Part shown: in pieces, positions 9,400-63,596 of the stretch
Layout: every line of letters begins with the position of its first letter
Position numbering within the stretch: position 1 is the first letter of the stretch
Sequence record: MN453779.2
Strand: one strand, 5' to 3'
Length of the DNA stretch: 64,000 bases
The notes under the pieces: model-generated
Seen by the model: only the letters and a program-made list of their open reading frames with translations
Databases searched by the model: none
What the model was told of the DNA's origin: nothing
Made by a program: the position numbers and the translations under genes

Positions 9400-10725
9400 A
9401 TGAGTGAAAATAATTACGTTTCAGTAGATGCTGAATTAACCGATGTATACAAGCCTCTGACAGATATCTTAGGTTTGCAATACGATGGCGCTATGAGTTA
9501 CGAAGAACGAGTTCAAAAACGTTACAATTACGTTAAAGAGCAATTGGAACTAGATCCTAACTATGAAGGATGGGATTGGGTAGAATACTGCGGTTCTGCT
9601 AACTCCACGGCTAAGGATCATGAATTTAAGCTGACGCGTTCAGTTGTTTCTATGATAAGTACCAAGGGTAAGTTAGCAACTAAATGTTCGGGAAAAGGAA
9701 TGTCGGTTTCCTTAGGATCGATATCTGGTAGATACCTCAGAACAACGTTCCAAAACTTAAACGGGAAATATATTAAGGCTTATATCCATCGGATTATCGG
9801 ATGTACATTTAAACCAATACCGGACAAATATAAGGATAAAGAAATTAGAGATCTCATAGTTAATCACGATGATGGCAACCGAACTAGAAACCTATTATCA
9901 AACGTGTCGTGGATGACACAGCAGGAAAATCTATTACACGCAGTAGAAATAGGTAAGATCCCTTCCGGGTTTGGACACGCTGAATCACTAAAGGCGACGT
10001 TTACTGTTCCCGGTGAACATTACGGAGAAACCTTTTTGCTCAACGGCTATAACCAAGCAAATGAATTCGGGATTTGCTACCATACGGTAAGGTCAGCCGC
10101 ATTGAAAAATAAGAATACACTATTTTGCGACTGGGAGGTAGCAGTATGCGAGGATATAGTAGAAACACCTATTTCTCCGCCAGATTGGTATAGTATCTAT
10201 ATCAAGGAACATCAAGATGAACGCATGAAGAAATATTTGGATAAGGATAAGAATACAGACACTTTCAAAGGTACTGAAGTCTTCACTGGTGTAGAAACAT
10301 TAACAGATATTTTAAACATAGATTATGACGAGACAACCTTAGATGAACGTGCTAAAATAAGAAAGGCGTACATAGATCTTCACCCAAACGTAGTACATTG
10401 GGAGTTTATGGAATACATCCCAGGGAAGGCATATGCTAGAGAAAACACAACTACACCACCTTGGAGAACTGAAAGTGTGGTTATCAGCACGGATGGAGAA
10501 GTAGGTAAAGTAAATTTAAAAGGTGAAGTTTTTACTAGGGGTGGTCCCAGTGGCGGGTATTATAAGTTCGTCCAAAAGTTTGGTGACTATCCCCAGGAAC
10601 ACATAACGATACACAGGGCAATGGCTTCTACGTTTATACCAGTTCCTGACGGATGTAAACTTAAAGCAAAGTTAGCGGATAATGATAATAAAAATTTGAC
10701 TTTAGACAATATTTACTGGGAGTAA
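9400..10725 (+). CDS. Free-standing HNH homing-endonuclease-like protein with a second, degenerate module
   Basis: HRIIGCTF...IVNHDDGNRTRNLLSNVSWMTQQENLLHA is a typical phage HNH motif; the C-terminal repeat (LTDIL...HRAMASTFIP...NLTLDNIYWE) lacks the NHxDG His. Confidence 0.85.
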   Translation: MSENNYVSVDAELTDVYKPLTDILGLQYDGAMSYEERVQKRYNYVKEQLELDPNYEGWDWVEYCGSANSTAKDHEFKLTRSVVSMISTKGKLATKCSGKGMSVSLGSISGRYLRTTFQNLNGKYIKAYIHRIIGCTFKPIPDKYKDKEIRDLIVNHDDGNRTRNLLSNVSWMTQQENLLHAVEIGKIPSGFGHAESLKATFTVPGEHYGETFLLNGYNQANEFGICYHTVRSAALKNKNTLFCDWEVAVCEDIVETPISPPDWYSIYIKEHQDERMKKYLDKDKNTDTFKGTEVFTGVETLTDILNIDYDETTLDERAKIRKAYIDLHPNVVHWEFMEYIPGKAYARENTTTPPWRTESVVISTDGEVGKVNLKGEVFTRGGPSGGYYKFVQKFGDYPQEHITIHRAMASTFIPVPDGCKLKAKLADNDNKNLTLDNIYWE

Positions 10726-12973: not shown

Positions 12974-12981
12974 CATAACAT
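12974..12981 (-). promoter_or_regulatory. Putative late promoter core ATGTTATG
   Basis: CATAACAT on + (ATGTTATG on -), 34 nt upstream of the 12940 start; phiKZ late promoters carry a TATG core. Confidence 0.45.
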
Positions 12982-13672
12982 GAACAAAAAGGCCCAGCAA
13001 AACGCAGCAGCAAAACGTGCCCGTCGTAACACTGCAAGTAAGCAAAAACGAGCTGATCGTAATGCCAAAGGGATTAAGGTATTGCCAGGTCGTAGACCCA
13101 CACATGGCAACGAGGCACTGACTGCATTGGCACAGGCTCTATCTCGTTCTAATCTCGATGACCCCCTCCAGTACATCCTTGATGGCGGGAAAGGTGAAGG
13201 TGAATTCAATCCAGAATCATTGATCAAAACCTCACGTAAAGCTGTAGGTGAAGTTTACAAACTGTTTAGTTATGTGGCATTGGCCGAACGTTTGGTACAA
13301 CAGAAAGCTTTTACGCATGACTTTGCTTGCGATCTTGATCGTGTTACCAATGAACTGATTGAGATTGATCGTCAAGTTATTCGTTTGCCTAAACTCGCAG
13401 AGATAGATCTGGAATCTTTCACTATCGATATGCTAGATATTGGTGGCTATGTAGAGAACTTGGCGGATCAGCTTTACTCTGAAATTGAAGCGCTCGAGAA
13501 ACACAGTTTTGTTATTGAAGACCGCCTCAATAAATCAGCTCATGACTTCCAAGTCTCCCACCCAGAAGTTACCGAGCAAGATGCTCGCTTGGTAATCATG
13601 GAAACCATTTCTCAGGAACGTATTAATAAGTTCCGTCAACTGCAACAACAAGCCGAAACTGCTGAGGTTTAA
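12980..13672 (+). CDS. Hypothetical protein with a basic N-terminus, 230 aa
   Basis: AAAGGAG RBS; K/R-rich first 35 aa, acidic helical remainder. Confidence 0.8.
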   Translation: MNKKAQQNAAAKRARRNTASKQKRADRNAKGIKVLPGRRPTHGNEALTALAQALSRSNLDDPLQYILDGGKGEGEFNPESLIKTSRKAVGEVYKLFSYVALAERLVQQKAFTHDFACDLDRVTNELIEIDRQVIRLPKLAEIDLESFTIDMLDIGGYVENLADQLYSEIEALEKHSFVIEDRLNKSAHDFQVSHPEVTEQDARLVIMETISQERINKFRQLQQQAETAEV

Positions 13673-13674
13673 TA

Positions 13675-15309
13675 ATGTCTGAAGAAATTCAAACTCAAGA
13701 ATCCACTAAACCTATTAAACGGATTAAGCCTGTCGAATATCTGCGAGAAGCTATCATCCAGGGTAAAGAAGCTAACCAAGCTTATTCTCTTCCTTTGTTC
13801 CTCGGTAGCTTGACTTCTCAACACGAGGCTATCCTCACTACCGCTACCGTGTACGCGCAACTTAAACAGGTTGATGATGATATTAACAGTGGGAATAGTA
13901 ATATCTCTGAAAGTGTTCGTAACTCATTGCGGGTTAAATTTGAAGAACTGCAAGAGAAACATTTCCCAGAAGTGGATCAAGATGAGCTCGGGGTAATGTT
14001 GATCAACTACTTCCAGTTCTATCAACGTGGATTGGATCGTGTACTTGCTCGAGAAGATAATCAAGAGTTCATTGATCCGTCAGTTCTGATGAATACGTTC
14101 CCATTCCGTAATGAACGTATTGGGATCATCAATCCGATCAAACCACAAGTAAAAGCTAAAGACTCTGTACGTGACCGTATGCGTCGTAGTAAGCTTAAAC
14201 TTGCCAATGAACCTGATACCTTCTCATTGATGTTGGTTAACTCTCGTGTCTTCTTGAAGATGAAAGTTCCTACTCCCCTGGATATGGTTCTGCTCATTAA
14301 CAAGATTACTATGGAACTTAAGGGTTATGGTGAGCGTTATCGAGTCTCCTCCATGCATCTGGAGCGAGCACTGATTACTCGTATCCTTGTGACCTTCATG
14401 TTGGAACGCACCACCTATTGGTCTGTTGCGGATATTCTTGATGCAGAAGAACTGTTCAACATCATCAAGTTCGAAGACGTTGGTATTATTGCGACTACTC
14501 TTCTTGCTAACGCTGCTCCTAAGGGTGTGAGTTACACCATCTCCTGTTTGGCTGATAAATGTGACTATAACGAGACTAATCTGATTGATCCTGCTAACCT
14601 TGTGGTTTATGACGATATTCGTCTACCGCAAGTTTATAAAGATCAAATTAGTGCAATCTTGAATACTGGTAAGAAGTTTACCATTGAAGAACTCAAAGCT
14701 TCAGATGTTCCCTACACTGACTTTGAAGGCAATCCAATCGATACTGTTGTTAAACACGACAACGGCGCTGGCGAAGTCCATATTAAGTCACCTTATCTGG
14801 CTGATTACTTTACCTGCTTTGATAACATGGCCGAACAGATTAACCCAGAGCTTCGTGAACTTGCTGTACAGTTCCCTAATCAGAAAGTGTACGCAACTAA
14901 ACGTGCTGAAGTAATGGGTTCTATCCGAATGGCTGAATATCTTCAGTGGTTTGATAAAACAGTTACTTTGCCAGAACCTGGCGAAGATGGGGAACCTGAG
15001 GTAATTAGTCGCCAGGAAGATCCTAAAGGGTTTGACCAAGGTCTGCTTGATATGTTCAATAGCGACGATAACTTGTTGCGTGATGCACTGGATAAAGTCA
15101 TTAAGAGTGTACCCAAGTTGACTTATGTTTACATTGGGATTCCTGATGATCACTGTCCTAAGTGTAAAACTCGTGCTAATGATGTAATCAAGGAGATTAA
15201 TGGAGGTTTCACTCCTATTGATCCAATTCTGAATTTTTTCGACCATACCCGGATGTTGATAGCGATGCGACGAGATCTCGTGACTTTACAAGAGGAAATT
15301 CTTTCCTAA
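13675..15309 (+). CDS. Putative tail/baseplate assembly chaperone (G-like or T4 gp26-like), 544 aa
   Basis: The ORF is certain; function is inferred from Cys motifs (CLADKC, CPKC) and the slippery heptamer near its 3' end. Confidence 0.5.
   Translation: MSEEIQTQESTKPIKRIKPVEYLREAIIQGKEANQAYSLPLFLGSLTSQHEAILTTATVYAQLKQVDDDINSGNSNISESVRNSLRVKFEELQEKHFPEVDQDELGVMLINYFQFYQRGLDRVLAREDNQEFIDPSVLMNTFPFRNERIGIINPIKPQVKAKDSVRDRMRRSKLKLANEPDTFSLMLVNSRVFLKMKVPTPLDMVLLINKITMELKGYGERYRVSSMHLERALITRILVTFMLERTTYWSVADILDAEELFNIIKFEDVGIIATTLLANAAPKGVSYTISCLADKCDYNETNLIDPANLVVYDDIRLPQVYKDQISAILNTGKKFTIEELKASDVPYTDFEGNPIDTVVKHDNGAGEVHIKSPYLADYFTCFDNMAEQINPELRELAVQFPNQKVYATKRAEVMGSIRMAEYLQWFDKTVTLPEPGEDGEPEVISRQEDPKGFDQGLLDMFNSDDNLLRDALDKVIKSVPKLTYVYIGIPDDHCPKCKTRANDVIKEINGGFTPIDPILNFFDHTRMLIAMRRDLVTLQEEILS
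15234..15240 (+). other. Candidate -1 ribosomal frameshift site T TTT TTC
   Basis: X XXY YYZ heptamer in frame (AAT TTT TTC); the -1 frame is open from 15222 into the downstream ORF. Confidence 0.65.
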
Positions 15310-15386
15310 GTAGCGATCAGTCCGGTCAGCTCCAACCAAGGTTCAAAGAGCAGAGTGATAAACTGCTCTTTGAAACCTACACCAAC

Positions 15387-15746
15387 ATGCCACAAAGTAA
15401 ATTAGAGTTGTTGATCACAGAGCGTAGAGCTTACATGATGAAGTTTGGTTGGGTTGCTGATAGAGAACCCTTAAGTAACACAATCAAATATAATCGGGCA
15501 CGCAGAGACTCTAGTCATCAATTCAGTGCGACAGCAGTTGGAGAGATGTTCGGGTTTAGAGAATATGGCGAAATCTTACCGCTTAAAGATTTTTTGACTC
15601 TTCCGTGTAATGTATTAGAAGATATCATCGATTCTGTGGCCGTTGGTAAACGCAAAGCAAAAGAAGTCGCCGACCGTATGACCAAGAAAAACAAAGCCAT
15701 TCCAGAGGCGGAACAACTTCTAAAACAACTTGAGAATAAGGATTAA
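15387..15746 (+). CDS. T-like (gp51-like) chaperone domain, probably translated as a frameshift fusion
   Basis: No SD before ATG 15387; frame open for 55 codons upstream with no ATG/GTG/TTG; motif LPLKDFLTLPCNVLEDII. Confidence 0.55.
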   Translation: MPQSKLELLITERRAYMMKFGWVADREPLSNTIKYNRARRDSSHQFSATAVGEMFGFREYGEILPLKDFLTLPCNVLEDIIDSVAVGKRKAKEVADRMTKKNKAIPEAEQLLKQLENKD

Positions 15747-15748
15747 CG

Positions 15749-16297
15749 ATGTCTAAAGCACACGTCCCACCTGTAGTGGAACAAAACAAAACTGCCGTAG
15801 CGCAGCAACAAGCTGCCGTCGAGAAAATGGATACAAGTGTTATGGTCCCTACTGAGAAGGTACCTACTACACCCGCTACCATTTACCAAAATGGGATCGA
15901 TAACTTTGTAAAGTTTATCAAGGGTGAATTTAAATCCGCTAGTTTGCAAGAACGTAGCAACTATCAATGCGAGTTTATGGGTACGATCGTCCAGATGCTC
16001 TCTATTGACTCTGAGGAAGTAACCAAGGTACTTAACCACTTTATCGGCGTAATTCTTGCCAACCCTGTACAATTTAGTCAAAGTGAAATCTTTGCTCCAC
16101 TGTACGTAGTTGAGAAAGAGAAAATGAAATCTGCTGACGAAATCCTTCGTTATAAGCAGTTCATGACCTTCATGGTGAGCTTGGCTAAGAACGCTCAGAA
16201 CCGTCAACGTTTTGTAGCTAATGTCGATATGCGTAAACTGTTGAGTTACTTCCCTAAGAAAGCAGCTGACAATTTGCAAGAGTACTGTTTCCGTTAA
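15749..16297 (+). CDS. Hypothetical protein, 182 aa
   Basis: AAGGA RBS, tightly packed, ends before a terminator. Confidence 0.8.
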   Translation: MSKAHVPPVVEQNKTAVAQQQAAVEKMDTSVMVPTEKVPTTPATIYQNGIDNFVKFIKGEFKSASLQERSNYQCEFMGTIVQMLSIDSEEVTKVLNHFIGVILANPVQFSQSEIFAPLYVVEKEKMKSADEILRYKQFMTFMVSLAKNAQNRQRFVANVDMRKLLSYFPKKAADNLQEYCFR

Positions 16298-61487: not shown

Positions 61488-63596
61488 ATGCTAGACAATG
61501 TAGAGTTTAACGCTTATATCCAAAAGACGATCGCATTTGCTCGTACTATTGTGATTAAGTGCGAAGATCTCGCATTGCTTGATAACCGGTTGATGGAACA
61601 GTACTACGGGATTAACTCCGGGACAGATAAGTCCAAATGGCGTTATTATCTCCACCTCAATGGCGAGTATCATAGCACTGATGAGATCATGAAAGTTCAG
61701 TCACTAGATAATGGTGACGTTATTGATTTTACAAAGGCTAATCTGGATATTCATCCAGCCACTAAACGCGCATATAGACTAGGTAGTTACTACTACACTA
61801 GACTTACGGAAAAATATCCAGCTCAGTCTAATTTGATTAACGGTATTATAAACCCGATTCCGCCTTCGGAATCCATACCAGCAAATAATTACCAAATCCT
61901 AAGATATAACAAAGATTATGTTCTTTGGAATGAGTATCAGTTGATTCCTGCTTTGCAAGAACATATTAATACCATGGTGTTGACATCTTTTAAAACTGAA
62001 TACCTGTATACAGATAACTTGATGTTAACTATTTTACTGGGTAATTTATATGCTTCACTAGTCTCAGCTATTTTGATGATAAGGGAAGAGGCAGAAGGTA
62101 CACGTTATGTGCACGAATTCCACATATGGTCAAAGTTAACAAGTCATGGCATTAGTCCGATCTATAAATCGGTACTTGATAACAAACAAACAATGTGGCT
62201 ATATCGCAATATAGATTGGGTACTTCGCAAACAAGGTAGAATCCAAACCTTTGACTCTTTAGTGGATATTATTCTTACTCACAGAAATATACCGCTAGCA
62301 AGACATGAAGCTCTACAGACCACCACTGACCAACTAGATAATTTAGTTCCTACTCCAGCGTTTATTTCTAGACCAGTCAACTTACAAAATAGACTTGGGT
62401 TATCAAGCCGGATGTTAACTGTTAGTGAGTTGATAGTTAAGGAAAACAAAGTTGCTATTGATAATGCGCAGGAAGAGTCCTACAGCATTGCAACAGCGGA
62501 GTACAACATCTCCACCGGTGTACACTCGGACATCCCTACAAAGGTGTTAGAGTCCACTATGGTGGATGCCACAGATCGTAATCCCAATACGATCATGCGT
62601 GTCCTCCATAATCACTGGATTTATTTAGCGGCTAATGATATTTATCAAATCAACCACGATTTTGTTGACTTTAGATCCGGAACGCGCTTTAAATTATCCA
62701 CTAAAGACGCCTACATTCTCTGGGCTTACTTACTAGATAGAAATAGGAAAACGACCCAAGAACATATCCCTGCTTATACTTACTTTAACGTAAGGAAGAT
62801 CCTACCTCCTAACTATCTTGTCTTAATGGGATTAGGAGATAAAGATATTCTTACTGAGGATGTTGCAAAAGACATTCTTAAAGTAACTGTTGAGTATTCA
62901 AGGATTATTTCTCCTGACGTGTTTTTCCTTAAAGCAAAAGAGATCTTTGATAAACAGTGGGATCATCGTAAACTTTATTCCAGAGTACTGAACCTTTTTA
63001 CTCACACCAGAGTTAAAAATGCGGTAGAGAGTTTATACGAAACTGGTGCTGTTAAGCTAACCAATAAAACACGGTATAAAGATTGGTTGACTAGACTAGA
63101 ACTTAACTTTGATGATTACAGTGAAGATGATTGTTTAGAATTAGCTTGGAACATCTGGAAGAAAGTGACCGGATGGGAAAATGCAGCTTTCATGACAATA
63201 GCCGATCAACAGAAACAGTTGATTAACTTGATGAAAGATCTCACCAGCTACACCGTTCAGTACATCGGTTCTACTACTGAAGGTGAGGTAGAAGGACAAA
63301 TCCAGTTAATGGATTTAGTTGATTCTGATATTTGGTCTCCTAATTCAGAAACCGGTTTAGAGTCTGATAATAAAGATCAACTTGTACTAGATGCATTAAA
63401 GGGTACCAAAGAAGCTAGTTTAACAGCTAAAGAGCATAGAGGTTCCCCAGAAGGTAATATGGTGGATCACTTAGAAATCGAATCGATTGGTTCTGGTGAT
63501 ATTCCTATTAATAGTTATTTGAAATATGTGGAAACTGAACCCGATTTCTCTCCATTCCATTTAAACGTCGGGCTAAGGCTTCGAGAAGCTGTTTAA
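61488..63596 (+). CDS. Virion structural protein (phiKZ gp128-like), 702 aa
   Basis: WRYYLHLNGEYH..D motif; divergent from the portal gene. Confidence 0.6.
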   Translation: MLDNVEFNAYIQKTIAFARTIVIKCEDLALLDNRLMEQYYGINSGTDKSKWRYYLHLNGEYHSTDEIMKVQSLDNGDVIDFTKANLDIHPATKRAYRLGSYYYTRLTEKYPAQSNLINGIINPIPPSESIPANNYQILRYNKDYVLWNEYQLIPALQEHINTMVLTSFKTEYLYTDNLMLTILLGNLYASLVSAILMIREEAEGTRYVHEFHIWSKLTSHGISPIYKSVLDNKQTMWLYRNIDWVLRKQGRIQTFDSLVDIILTHRNIPLARHEALQTTTDQLDNLVPTPAFISRPVNLQNRLGLSSRMLTVSELIVKENKVAIDNAQEESYSIATAEYNISTGVHSDIPTKVLESTMVDATDRNPNTIMRVLHNHWIYLAANDIYQINHDFVDFRSGTRFKLSTKDAYILWAYLLDRNRKTTQEHIPAYTYFNVRKILPPNYLVLMGLGDKDILTEDVAKDILKVTVEYSRIISPDVFFLKAKEIFDKQWDHRKLYSRVLNLFTHTRVKNAVESLYETGAVKLTNKTRYKDWLTRLELNFDDYSEDDCLELAWNIWKKVTGWENAAFMTIADQQKQLINLMKDLTSYTVQYIGSTTEGEVEGQIQLMDLVDSDIWSPNSETGLESDNKDQLVLDALKGTKEASLTAKEHRGSPEGNMVDHLEIESIGSGDIPINSYLKYVETEPDFSPFHLNVGLRLREAV

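Follow-up and report, generated by a model that had tools for sequence, protein, structure and literature searches.

A conserved -1 frameshift site probably joins two adjacent open reading frames of the cg18 locus in phiKZ-related jumbo phages

Two neighboring genes of Aeromonas phage PS2 (MN453779.2, genus Ferozepurvirus), both labeled 'hypothetical protein' in GenBank, very likely form one recoding unit with a -1 ribosomal slip at the heptamer T TTT TTC. The window, that is the whole stretch of 64,000 nucleotides (nt) analyzed here, was identified as PS2 by megablast (100% identity; window position = record position minus 62000), and the recoding unit and its two flanking operon genes are all on the plus strand. 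Open reading frame (ORF) A (PS2_0080; 13675..15309) encodes the 0-frame product of 544 amino acids (aa) and stops at 15307-15309. ORF B (PS2_0081; 15387..15746; 119 aa) lies in the -1 frame relative to A. The slippery heptamer, of the X XXY YYZ type, is located at 15234..15240. A preliminary description of this DNA, made from the letters alone, had proposed a programmed -1 frameshift that joins A to the downstream ORF. The comparative data presented here strongly support such a frameshift and its conservation: heptamer, open -1 frame, conservation of both frames and a start codon of variable position recur throughout a set of 30 genomes. The kind of recoding is known; the family in which it is proposed here has no assigned function and belongs to the core genes of phiKZ-like jumbo phages. 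In the literature searched and the GenBank records examined, no description of a frameshift in phiKZ-like phages was found.

Results

The slip site and the -1 frame in PS2

ORF A contains the codons AAT TTT TTC, in which the heptamer stands in 0-frame register and covers codons 521-522, encoding Phe-Phe. The last codon of the heptamer (522) lies 22 codons ahead of the last sense codon of A. Upstream, the -1 frame is closed by a TGA at 15219-15221, so that it opens only four codons before the heptamer, and from there a stop-to-stop ORF of 174 codons (15222..15746) extends to a TAA at 15744-15746. The first start codon in this frame is ATG 15387, 51 codons past the heptamer; no ATG, GTG or TTG occurs earlier, and a gap of 77 nt separates the stop of A from this ATG. 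A purine-rich Shine-Dalgarno (SD) sequence was looked for at ATG 15387 and at the following ATG 15435, and neither has one. AAGGA/GGAG-type SD sites are present 6-10 nt upstream in six of six neighboring genes checked. The preliminary description had reported the 544-aa ORF with its heptamer, the opening of the -1 frame after the TGA and its extent to 15746, the missing start codon and SD sequence, and the gap; all of these, including coordinates and register, were confirmed.

This arrangement exceeds chance expectation. The 56 long ORFs of the window contain 60 in-frame X XXY YYZ heptamers, and T TTT TTC at 15234 is followed by the longest open -1 run of all (170 codons). For open -1 runs counted from any in-gene codon of the window, the median is 4 codons and the 99th percentile 37.

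A further heptamer, T TTA AAC at 63560-63566, lies in frame in a 702-aa ORF (61488-63596), 12 codons (10 sense codons) before its stop, and the -1 frame is open there for 121 codons. The next gene begins 15 codons on, at ATG 63605. Because it has its own start with a good AAGGA SD sequence, it is probably an ordinary adjacent gene and not a frameshift extension.

Heptamer and open -1 frame are conserved in 30 genomes

Homologs of both reading frames were collected by tblastn. With ORF A as query 71 records were obtained, among them EL, OBP, RisingSun and others, and chaining the search via RisingSun and PCH45 gave 207 records that include phiKZ-like phages, 201phi2-1, RAY, Ralstonia phages and Cronobacter phage CR5. 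The -1 frame, translated from stop to stop, matched 44 phage records. These alignments begin at the first residues of the translation (query residue 1-4 in distant phages), with identities mostly of 26-48% outside the PS2 group, and in nearly all annotated records they straddle two annotated coding sequences (CDS). Twenty-five annotated loci and four uncultivated viral contigs were then examined one by one; a scan of IMG/VR with a narrow alignment had yielded 6 loci, 4 of them new. The resulting set of 30 genomes, PS2 and its sisters included, covers EL, OBP, RisingSun, PCH45, a phiKZ-like phage, 201phi2-1, RAY and CR5, with identities of A to PS2 down to 13%.

All 30 genomes carry an in-register heptamer T TTT TT(C/T/A) on the same invariant Phe-Phe. 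The T run at the site comprises 6-8 T, six in most genomes. The codon preceding the heptamer ends in T in every genome, though it encodes N, T, S, A, G, V or L. Likewise, the -1 frame is open in 30/30 genomes from ahead of the heptamer and for 153-182 codons onward to the end of B. Conservation of heptamer and open -1 frame in orthologous gene pairs, which the preliminary description had put forward as a check of its proposal, is thus found throughout the set. In many genomes the -1 ORF opens just 2-4 codons before the site, and there is therefore no room for a start codon. The first ATG, GTG or TTG of the frame lies 10-87 codons past the heptamer at a position that is not conserved, with the value of 87 codons in the phiKZ-like phage. 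Between the stop of A and the first ATG of B, the -1 frames of 21 genomes contain no stop in 676 codons, against 42 and 76 stops in the other two frames.

No homolog without this frame arrangement was found among the matches. A single-ORF fusion of A and B was searched for in 1.8 billion protein representatives and with a word-index search, and none was found; one 691-aa match was rejected, as it matches through repeated short stretches. The GenBank records examined all show two separate CDS and never a joined one, in line with the earlier expectation that gene callers miss the extension.

In one record, that of Pseudomonas phage vB_PQ1 (PQ516283.1), the A homolog was matched as three pieces over five annotated CDS and looks broken or interrupted at least twice.

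The overlap and the annotated gap are conserved as coding sequence

Between the heptamer and ORF B lie an overlap of the 0 and -1 frames (15241..15309) and an annotated 'intergenic gap' (15310..15386). In the overlap both translations are conserved. The 0 frame encodes a conserved C-terminal helix of A of 22 aa with a conserved stop position; the -1 frame encodes a conserved Pro-rich segment or linker that ends in an RGxSFL-type motif. Across 16 lineages, third positions of the 0 frame are more alike in the overlap (identity 0.58) than upstream of it (0.42), and first and second positions are less alike (0.63 against 0.72). Such a shift is the mark of double coding.

The close relatives were compared in the same region. 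Four sister phages share 91-93% identity with the PS2 region (megablast), and the five Ferozepurvirus genomes show no change in or around the heptamer. Substitutions up to 15225 are located at third positions of the 0 frame. The overlap contains one change only, which is non-synonymous in both frames. In the gap, all three single substitutions (15323, 15329 and 15356) fall at third positions of the -1 frame and are synonymous there, as are six substitutions at the start of B. With synonymous changes and no stops, the gap behaves as coding sequence of the -1 frame. Taken together, the results from close and distant relatives leave one plausible route by which the conserved -1 sequence could be translated, namely a switch out of the 0 frame at the heptamer.

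The length of the 0-frame tail after the heptamer varies between groups. In the 20 genomes nearest to PS2 it measures 69 nt, versus 135 nt in PCH45 (fetched locus 2239-2380), where it is unrelated in sequence, and 27-36 nt in the phiKZ-like phage and 201phi2-1. The C-terminus of the short isoform is therefore conserved only within subgroups.

ORF B and its annotated start

ORF B belongs to phrog_19747, a function-unknown family whose sequences begin near the ATG. The protein is made up of a helical domain and a tail rich in Lys and Ala, and the domain contains the conserved motif H-P-W-S ... G-E-x-F-G ... P-L-K-D-Y-L. In a structural model of the -1 ORF (predicted local distance difference test score (pLDDT) 68) the N-terminal ~35 residues are disordered and the remainder is helical. 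A Foldseek comparison of the B model with BFVD returned one unnamed match only (E value (E) 6e-3).

The assignment of the B start is arbitrary across records. Three sister records (ACP1, AVP1 and pAEv1810) place it at the second ATG (15435), and the first ATG is unchanged in all five genomes. Among relatives the annotated start may lie inside A, with a 136-nt overlap in RAY, or 26-237 nt past the A stop in others, and the called B homologs mostly begin inside the helical domain. For a metagenomic B homolog of 172 aa (P0035), the called start is at the slip-site region and the protein covers nearly the whole -1 ORF. The extension is thus conserved in uncultivated relatives as well, and gene callers choose unrelated starts.

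Proposed mechanism and alternative explanations

Most ribosomes would translate A in the 0 frame and terminate at 15307-15309, which would yield the 544-aa protein ending in the conserved helix. At the heptamer, where two tRNA-Phe would occupy the P and A sites, a fraction of the ribosomes would move back by one base and continue in the -1 frame across the overlap and the supposed gap into B. The sequence T TTT TTC permits tandem re-pairing of two tRNA-Phe, as in the standard model of -1 slippage. In the long product, ~690 aa by arithmetic, the last 22 residues of A would be exchanged for the disordered Pro-rich linker and the helical B domain.

Several points weigh against this frameshift. 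The trans-frame protein is a prediction from comparative sequence. A conserved RNA structure downstream of the site was looked for and not found (alifold energy -3.3 kcal/mol with no covariation; z = -0.31 for the PS2 90-nt fold). A conserved SD-like element upstream of the site was not found either, and a GGAGG that lies 28 nt upstream in PS2 has no counterpart elsewhere. B may also be translated separately from an internal ATG. Finally, a run of 6-8 T could also support slippage during transcription, which sequence cannot separate from ribosomal slippage. A stimulatory element is not obligatory for the X XXY YYZ class of frameshifts, and some chaperone frameshifts likewise proceed without a stimulatory structure. 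Since no stimulatory RNA element was found, the efficiency of the slip may be modest or low.

Slippage of the phage RNA polymerase would add an extra U on the T6-T8 run in some transcripts; with one base more in the mRNA, ordinary translation would likewise pass into the -1 frame and yield the same kind of extended protein. Such a process would fit the conservation of a homopolymer of 6-8 T and the lack of a ribosomal stimulatory structure, but it leaves aside that the conserved element is in every case a complete X XXY YYZ heptamer in register and that a T ending is selected in the preceding codon, as tandem tRNA slippage requires. Moreover, six T, the commonest length, is short for efficient polymerase slippage, judging from bacterial cases. 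We consider slippage of the polymerase improbable and infer that the slip is ribosomal rather than transcriptional.

Even less probable is that A and B are two separate genes, with B translated from ATG 15387 or 15435 behind a leader that is stop-free by chance. Every GenBank record examined is annotated in this way, phrog_19747 starts near the ATG, most called homologs start in the helical domain, and independent initiation could coexist with frameshifting. An untranslated leader, however, would not be expected to lack stops in all of the 676 codons counted above when the other frames have 42 and 76, to be conserved as protein together with the overlap, or to collect gap substitutions that are synonymous in the -1 frame. 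In addition, the ATG has no SD sequence and its position varies, up to 87 codons past the heptamer in the phiKZ-like phage. That one long gene was split by a sequencing error or a recent frameshift mutation has hardly any probability at all: homopolymer runs such as this site are prone to such errors, but the same arrangement recurs in 30 independently sequenced genomes of many genera, the 0-frame tail and its stop position are conserved, and no intact fused homolog exists among the matches. A programmed ribosomal -1 frameshift therefore remains the reading that we adopt in the following.

ORF A is a member of the cg18 core gene family

A match of ORF A to phrog_4585 (E 6e-86), a PHROG of unknown function, and conserved synteny assign the predicted protein to PHROG 4585 and the Chimalliviridae core gene cg18. 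It is a homolog of phiKZ gp77, EL gp47, 201phi2-1 gp136 and RAY gp267, and the record of 201phi2-1 gp136 itself bears the note 'similar to phiKZ gp77 and EL gp47'. Goslar gp081, phiKZ gp077 and RAY gp267 have been listed as core gene cg18, a 'hypothetical protein' that also occurs beyond chimallin-encoding phages (Prichard et al. 2023, Table S3). Our tblastn match in CR5 agrees with a distribution that is not limited to chimallin-encoding phages. Proteins called 'gp77' in papers on Goslar, PCH45 and PhiPA3 are different genes under each phage's own numbering and were set aside. As in other members of the family, the position of PS2 A beside the virion RNA polymerase beta' gene is kept; in the literature searched, the published description of cg18 mentions neither a frameshift nor a downstream partner.

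An alignment of 21 sequences, with identities to PS2 down to 13%, has nine invariant columns, among them C291, C296, C494, C497 and the Phe-Phe of the slip site. The four Cys residues probably form a metal site from two distant pairs. In the AlphaFold2 model of A (pLDDT 78, predicted template modeling score 0.78), the slip site is located at the start of the C-terminal helix (517-543). Foldseek found no fold match for this model in the Protein Data Bank (PDB) with E below 0.48; in BFVD it retrieved jumbo-phage homologs at E of about 1e-17. Sequence searches of Pfam, PHROG and PDB with A, B and their neighbors yielded only two PHROGs of unknown function, and phiKZ-like A and B sequences had no match among PDB chains.

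Comparison with tail and baseplate-hub assembly chaperones

The preliminary description had regarded the A-B pair as the equivalent of a G/GT, gp26/gp51-like chaperone pair. The part of this claim that stands is the architecture: a short and a long isoform are predicted, with the slip near the end of the first ORF, as in the G/GT type. The chaperone label itself is weakly supported; it may serve as a reasonable analogy for the mode of action, in which two isoforms would have a common body and the long isoform alone would carry an extra binding domain. That A and its extended form are a non-structural pair of assembly factors acting like tail or baseplate-hub assembly chaperones is, by this analogy, our best but tentative guess at the function, and one that we hold to be less likely than not.

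The frameshift pairs of tail chaperones (Xu, Hendrix & Duda 2004, as cited in PMC9024508), such as lambda gpG/gpGT and P2 gpE/gpE+E', resemble A-B in several respects. In these pairs, too, an X XXY YYZ heptamer precedes the end of the first ORF by a few codons, and the downstream -1 ORF has no conserved start or SD sequence of its own. Short and long isoforms share an N-terminal body, an arrangement that is kept where the sequence is not, and there is no strong stimulatory structure. In contrast, G-type proteins have roughly 100-150 aa and A has 544 aa, A-B is not placed between tube and tape-measure genes, and A matches the families of tail assembly chaperones neither in sequence nor in fold (Foldseek E at least 0.7). 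The slip site of P2 gpE/gpE+E' is T TTT TTG. T7 gene 10A/10B and E. coli dnaX (tau/gamma) likewise owe a fixed isoform ratio to a slippery heptamer that lies close to the end of an ORF. In dnaX the slip shortens the protein and is accompanied by an SD-like element and a hairpin, unlike in A-B; T7 10B is a capsid protein, and no homology of A-B to T7 10B or dnaX was found.

T4 gp26 and gp51 are hub assembly chaperones (PMC3004832, Table 2). The A model has a likeness to BFVD proteins so named: several entries that bear the name of a T4-like baseplate hub assembly protein, chaperone or subunit were matched weakly (E 4e-4 to 6e-2, TM 0.43-0.55 on target), and BFVD entries named 'tail assembly chaperone' were reached only at E of at least 0.7. 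A and T4 gp51 both contain a CPxC knuckle (CPKC in T4), with a different order of the Cys pairs, and the T4 proteins and A are alike non-structural or doubtful virion components. T4 gp26 and gp51 derive from two separate, divergent genes with an internal start, as opposed to the frameshift in A-B.

A number of results speak against a chaperone function. A has no match to a tail assembly chaperone in Pfam or PHROG. Both T4 gp26 and gp51 (from AF158101) match PF12322 (E 9e-64 and 4e-52), and none of 31 A-family proteins matches this family even at E <= 10. Profile comparison did not support homology to the T4 proteins: for A and the gp51 family, hhalign gave a probability of 13% over 26 columns around the CPxC knuckle, and for B, the comparison with T4 gp51 or gp26 gave at most 1.1%. 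The tail-gene context is likewise missing. As the preliminary description had already remarked and the PS2 annotation confirms, the A-B locus does not adjoin tube or tape-measure genes; its neighbors are a virion-protein gene, a gene resembling that of the virion RNA polymerase, and hypothetical genes.

Churi gp256, the homolog of phiKZ gp077, is listed among the non-structural proteins detected 15 min after infection (PMC11849849). This fits a protein that is not in the virion, but 15 min is early for a tail chaperone and counts against that function. Also against it, liquid chromatography-tandem mass spectrometry of a Goslar virion preparation detected gp081 with 24 peptides, at an estimate of 15-35 copies (bioRxiv 10.64898/2026.04.21.720040, Table S4). 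The preparation also held PhuZ and chimallin, and the presence of gp081 is therefore no proof of virion membership. The record of 201phi2-1 gp136 is without a mass-spectrometry note, unlike those of its neighbors.

Goslar gp082 (12.9 kDa), which by its position we take to be the B ortholog, was detected with 1 peptide in the same preparation, and gp081 and gp082 appear only as separate entries (bioRxiv 10.64898/2026.04.21.720040). The label-free quantification area per mass of gp082 is ~1/7 of that of gp081, a value from data (1 versus 24 peptides) too thin to use. Provided that gp082 is the B ortholog, the ratio would be compatible with a minority trans-frame product.

Gene order around the A-B locus

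The order of genes around A-B is conserved. A virion RNA polymerase beta' gene and a virion-protein gene, both on the opposite strand, come first; the gp78-like gene is next, then A, then B. In relatives the block is succeeded by a gene for a helicase or for a DNA polymerase. In PS2, the upstream neighbor PS2_0079 (12980..13672; ORF list and GenBank) is phiKZ gp78-like by position. It belongs to the same operon and lies outside the recoding unit; the record of its syntenic counterpart in 201phi2-1 notes 'similar to phiKZ gp78'. The following operon gene, PS2_0082 (15749..16297), falls in phrog_14374 and keeps its place in most relatives. Mobile endonucleases are common around the conserved A-B block. 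Putative HNH endonuclease genes lie on both sides of the wider region in PS2 (PS2_0076, 9400-10725, and PS2_0090, from about 21515), and in AerS_266 an HNH homing endonuclease is situated just 3' of the A-B-C block.

Discussion

The gene cg18 is one of roughly 70 core genes of nucleus-forming jumbo phages. If the slip at T TTT TTC is real, all phiKZ-like records examined carry a wrong annotation here: each lacks a protein of ~690 aa and shows instead a 'gene' of about 100-140 aa whose start is arbitrary. A core protein that comes in two forms at a set ratio, one with an exchanged C-terminal module, would offer a handle for existing proteomic, ribosome-profiling and cryo-electron microscopy data. 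The finding also bears on which proteins act as tape-measure or hub chaperones in phiKZ-like phages.

We suggest, as a possibility that we rate somewhat below even, that the frameshift is ancient and obligatory in cg18 of phiKZ-related jumbo phages, whether nucleus-forming or not. It would then set the isoform ratio of a four-Cys protein with a new fold that serves as an unrecognized factor of assembly or early infection, and not as a tail chaperone of the lambda type. On this reading, no recoding event would have been described before among the core genes of nucleus-forming phages.

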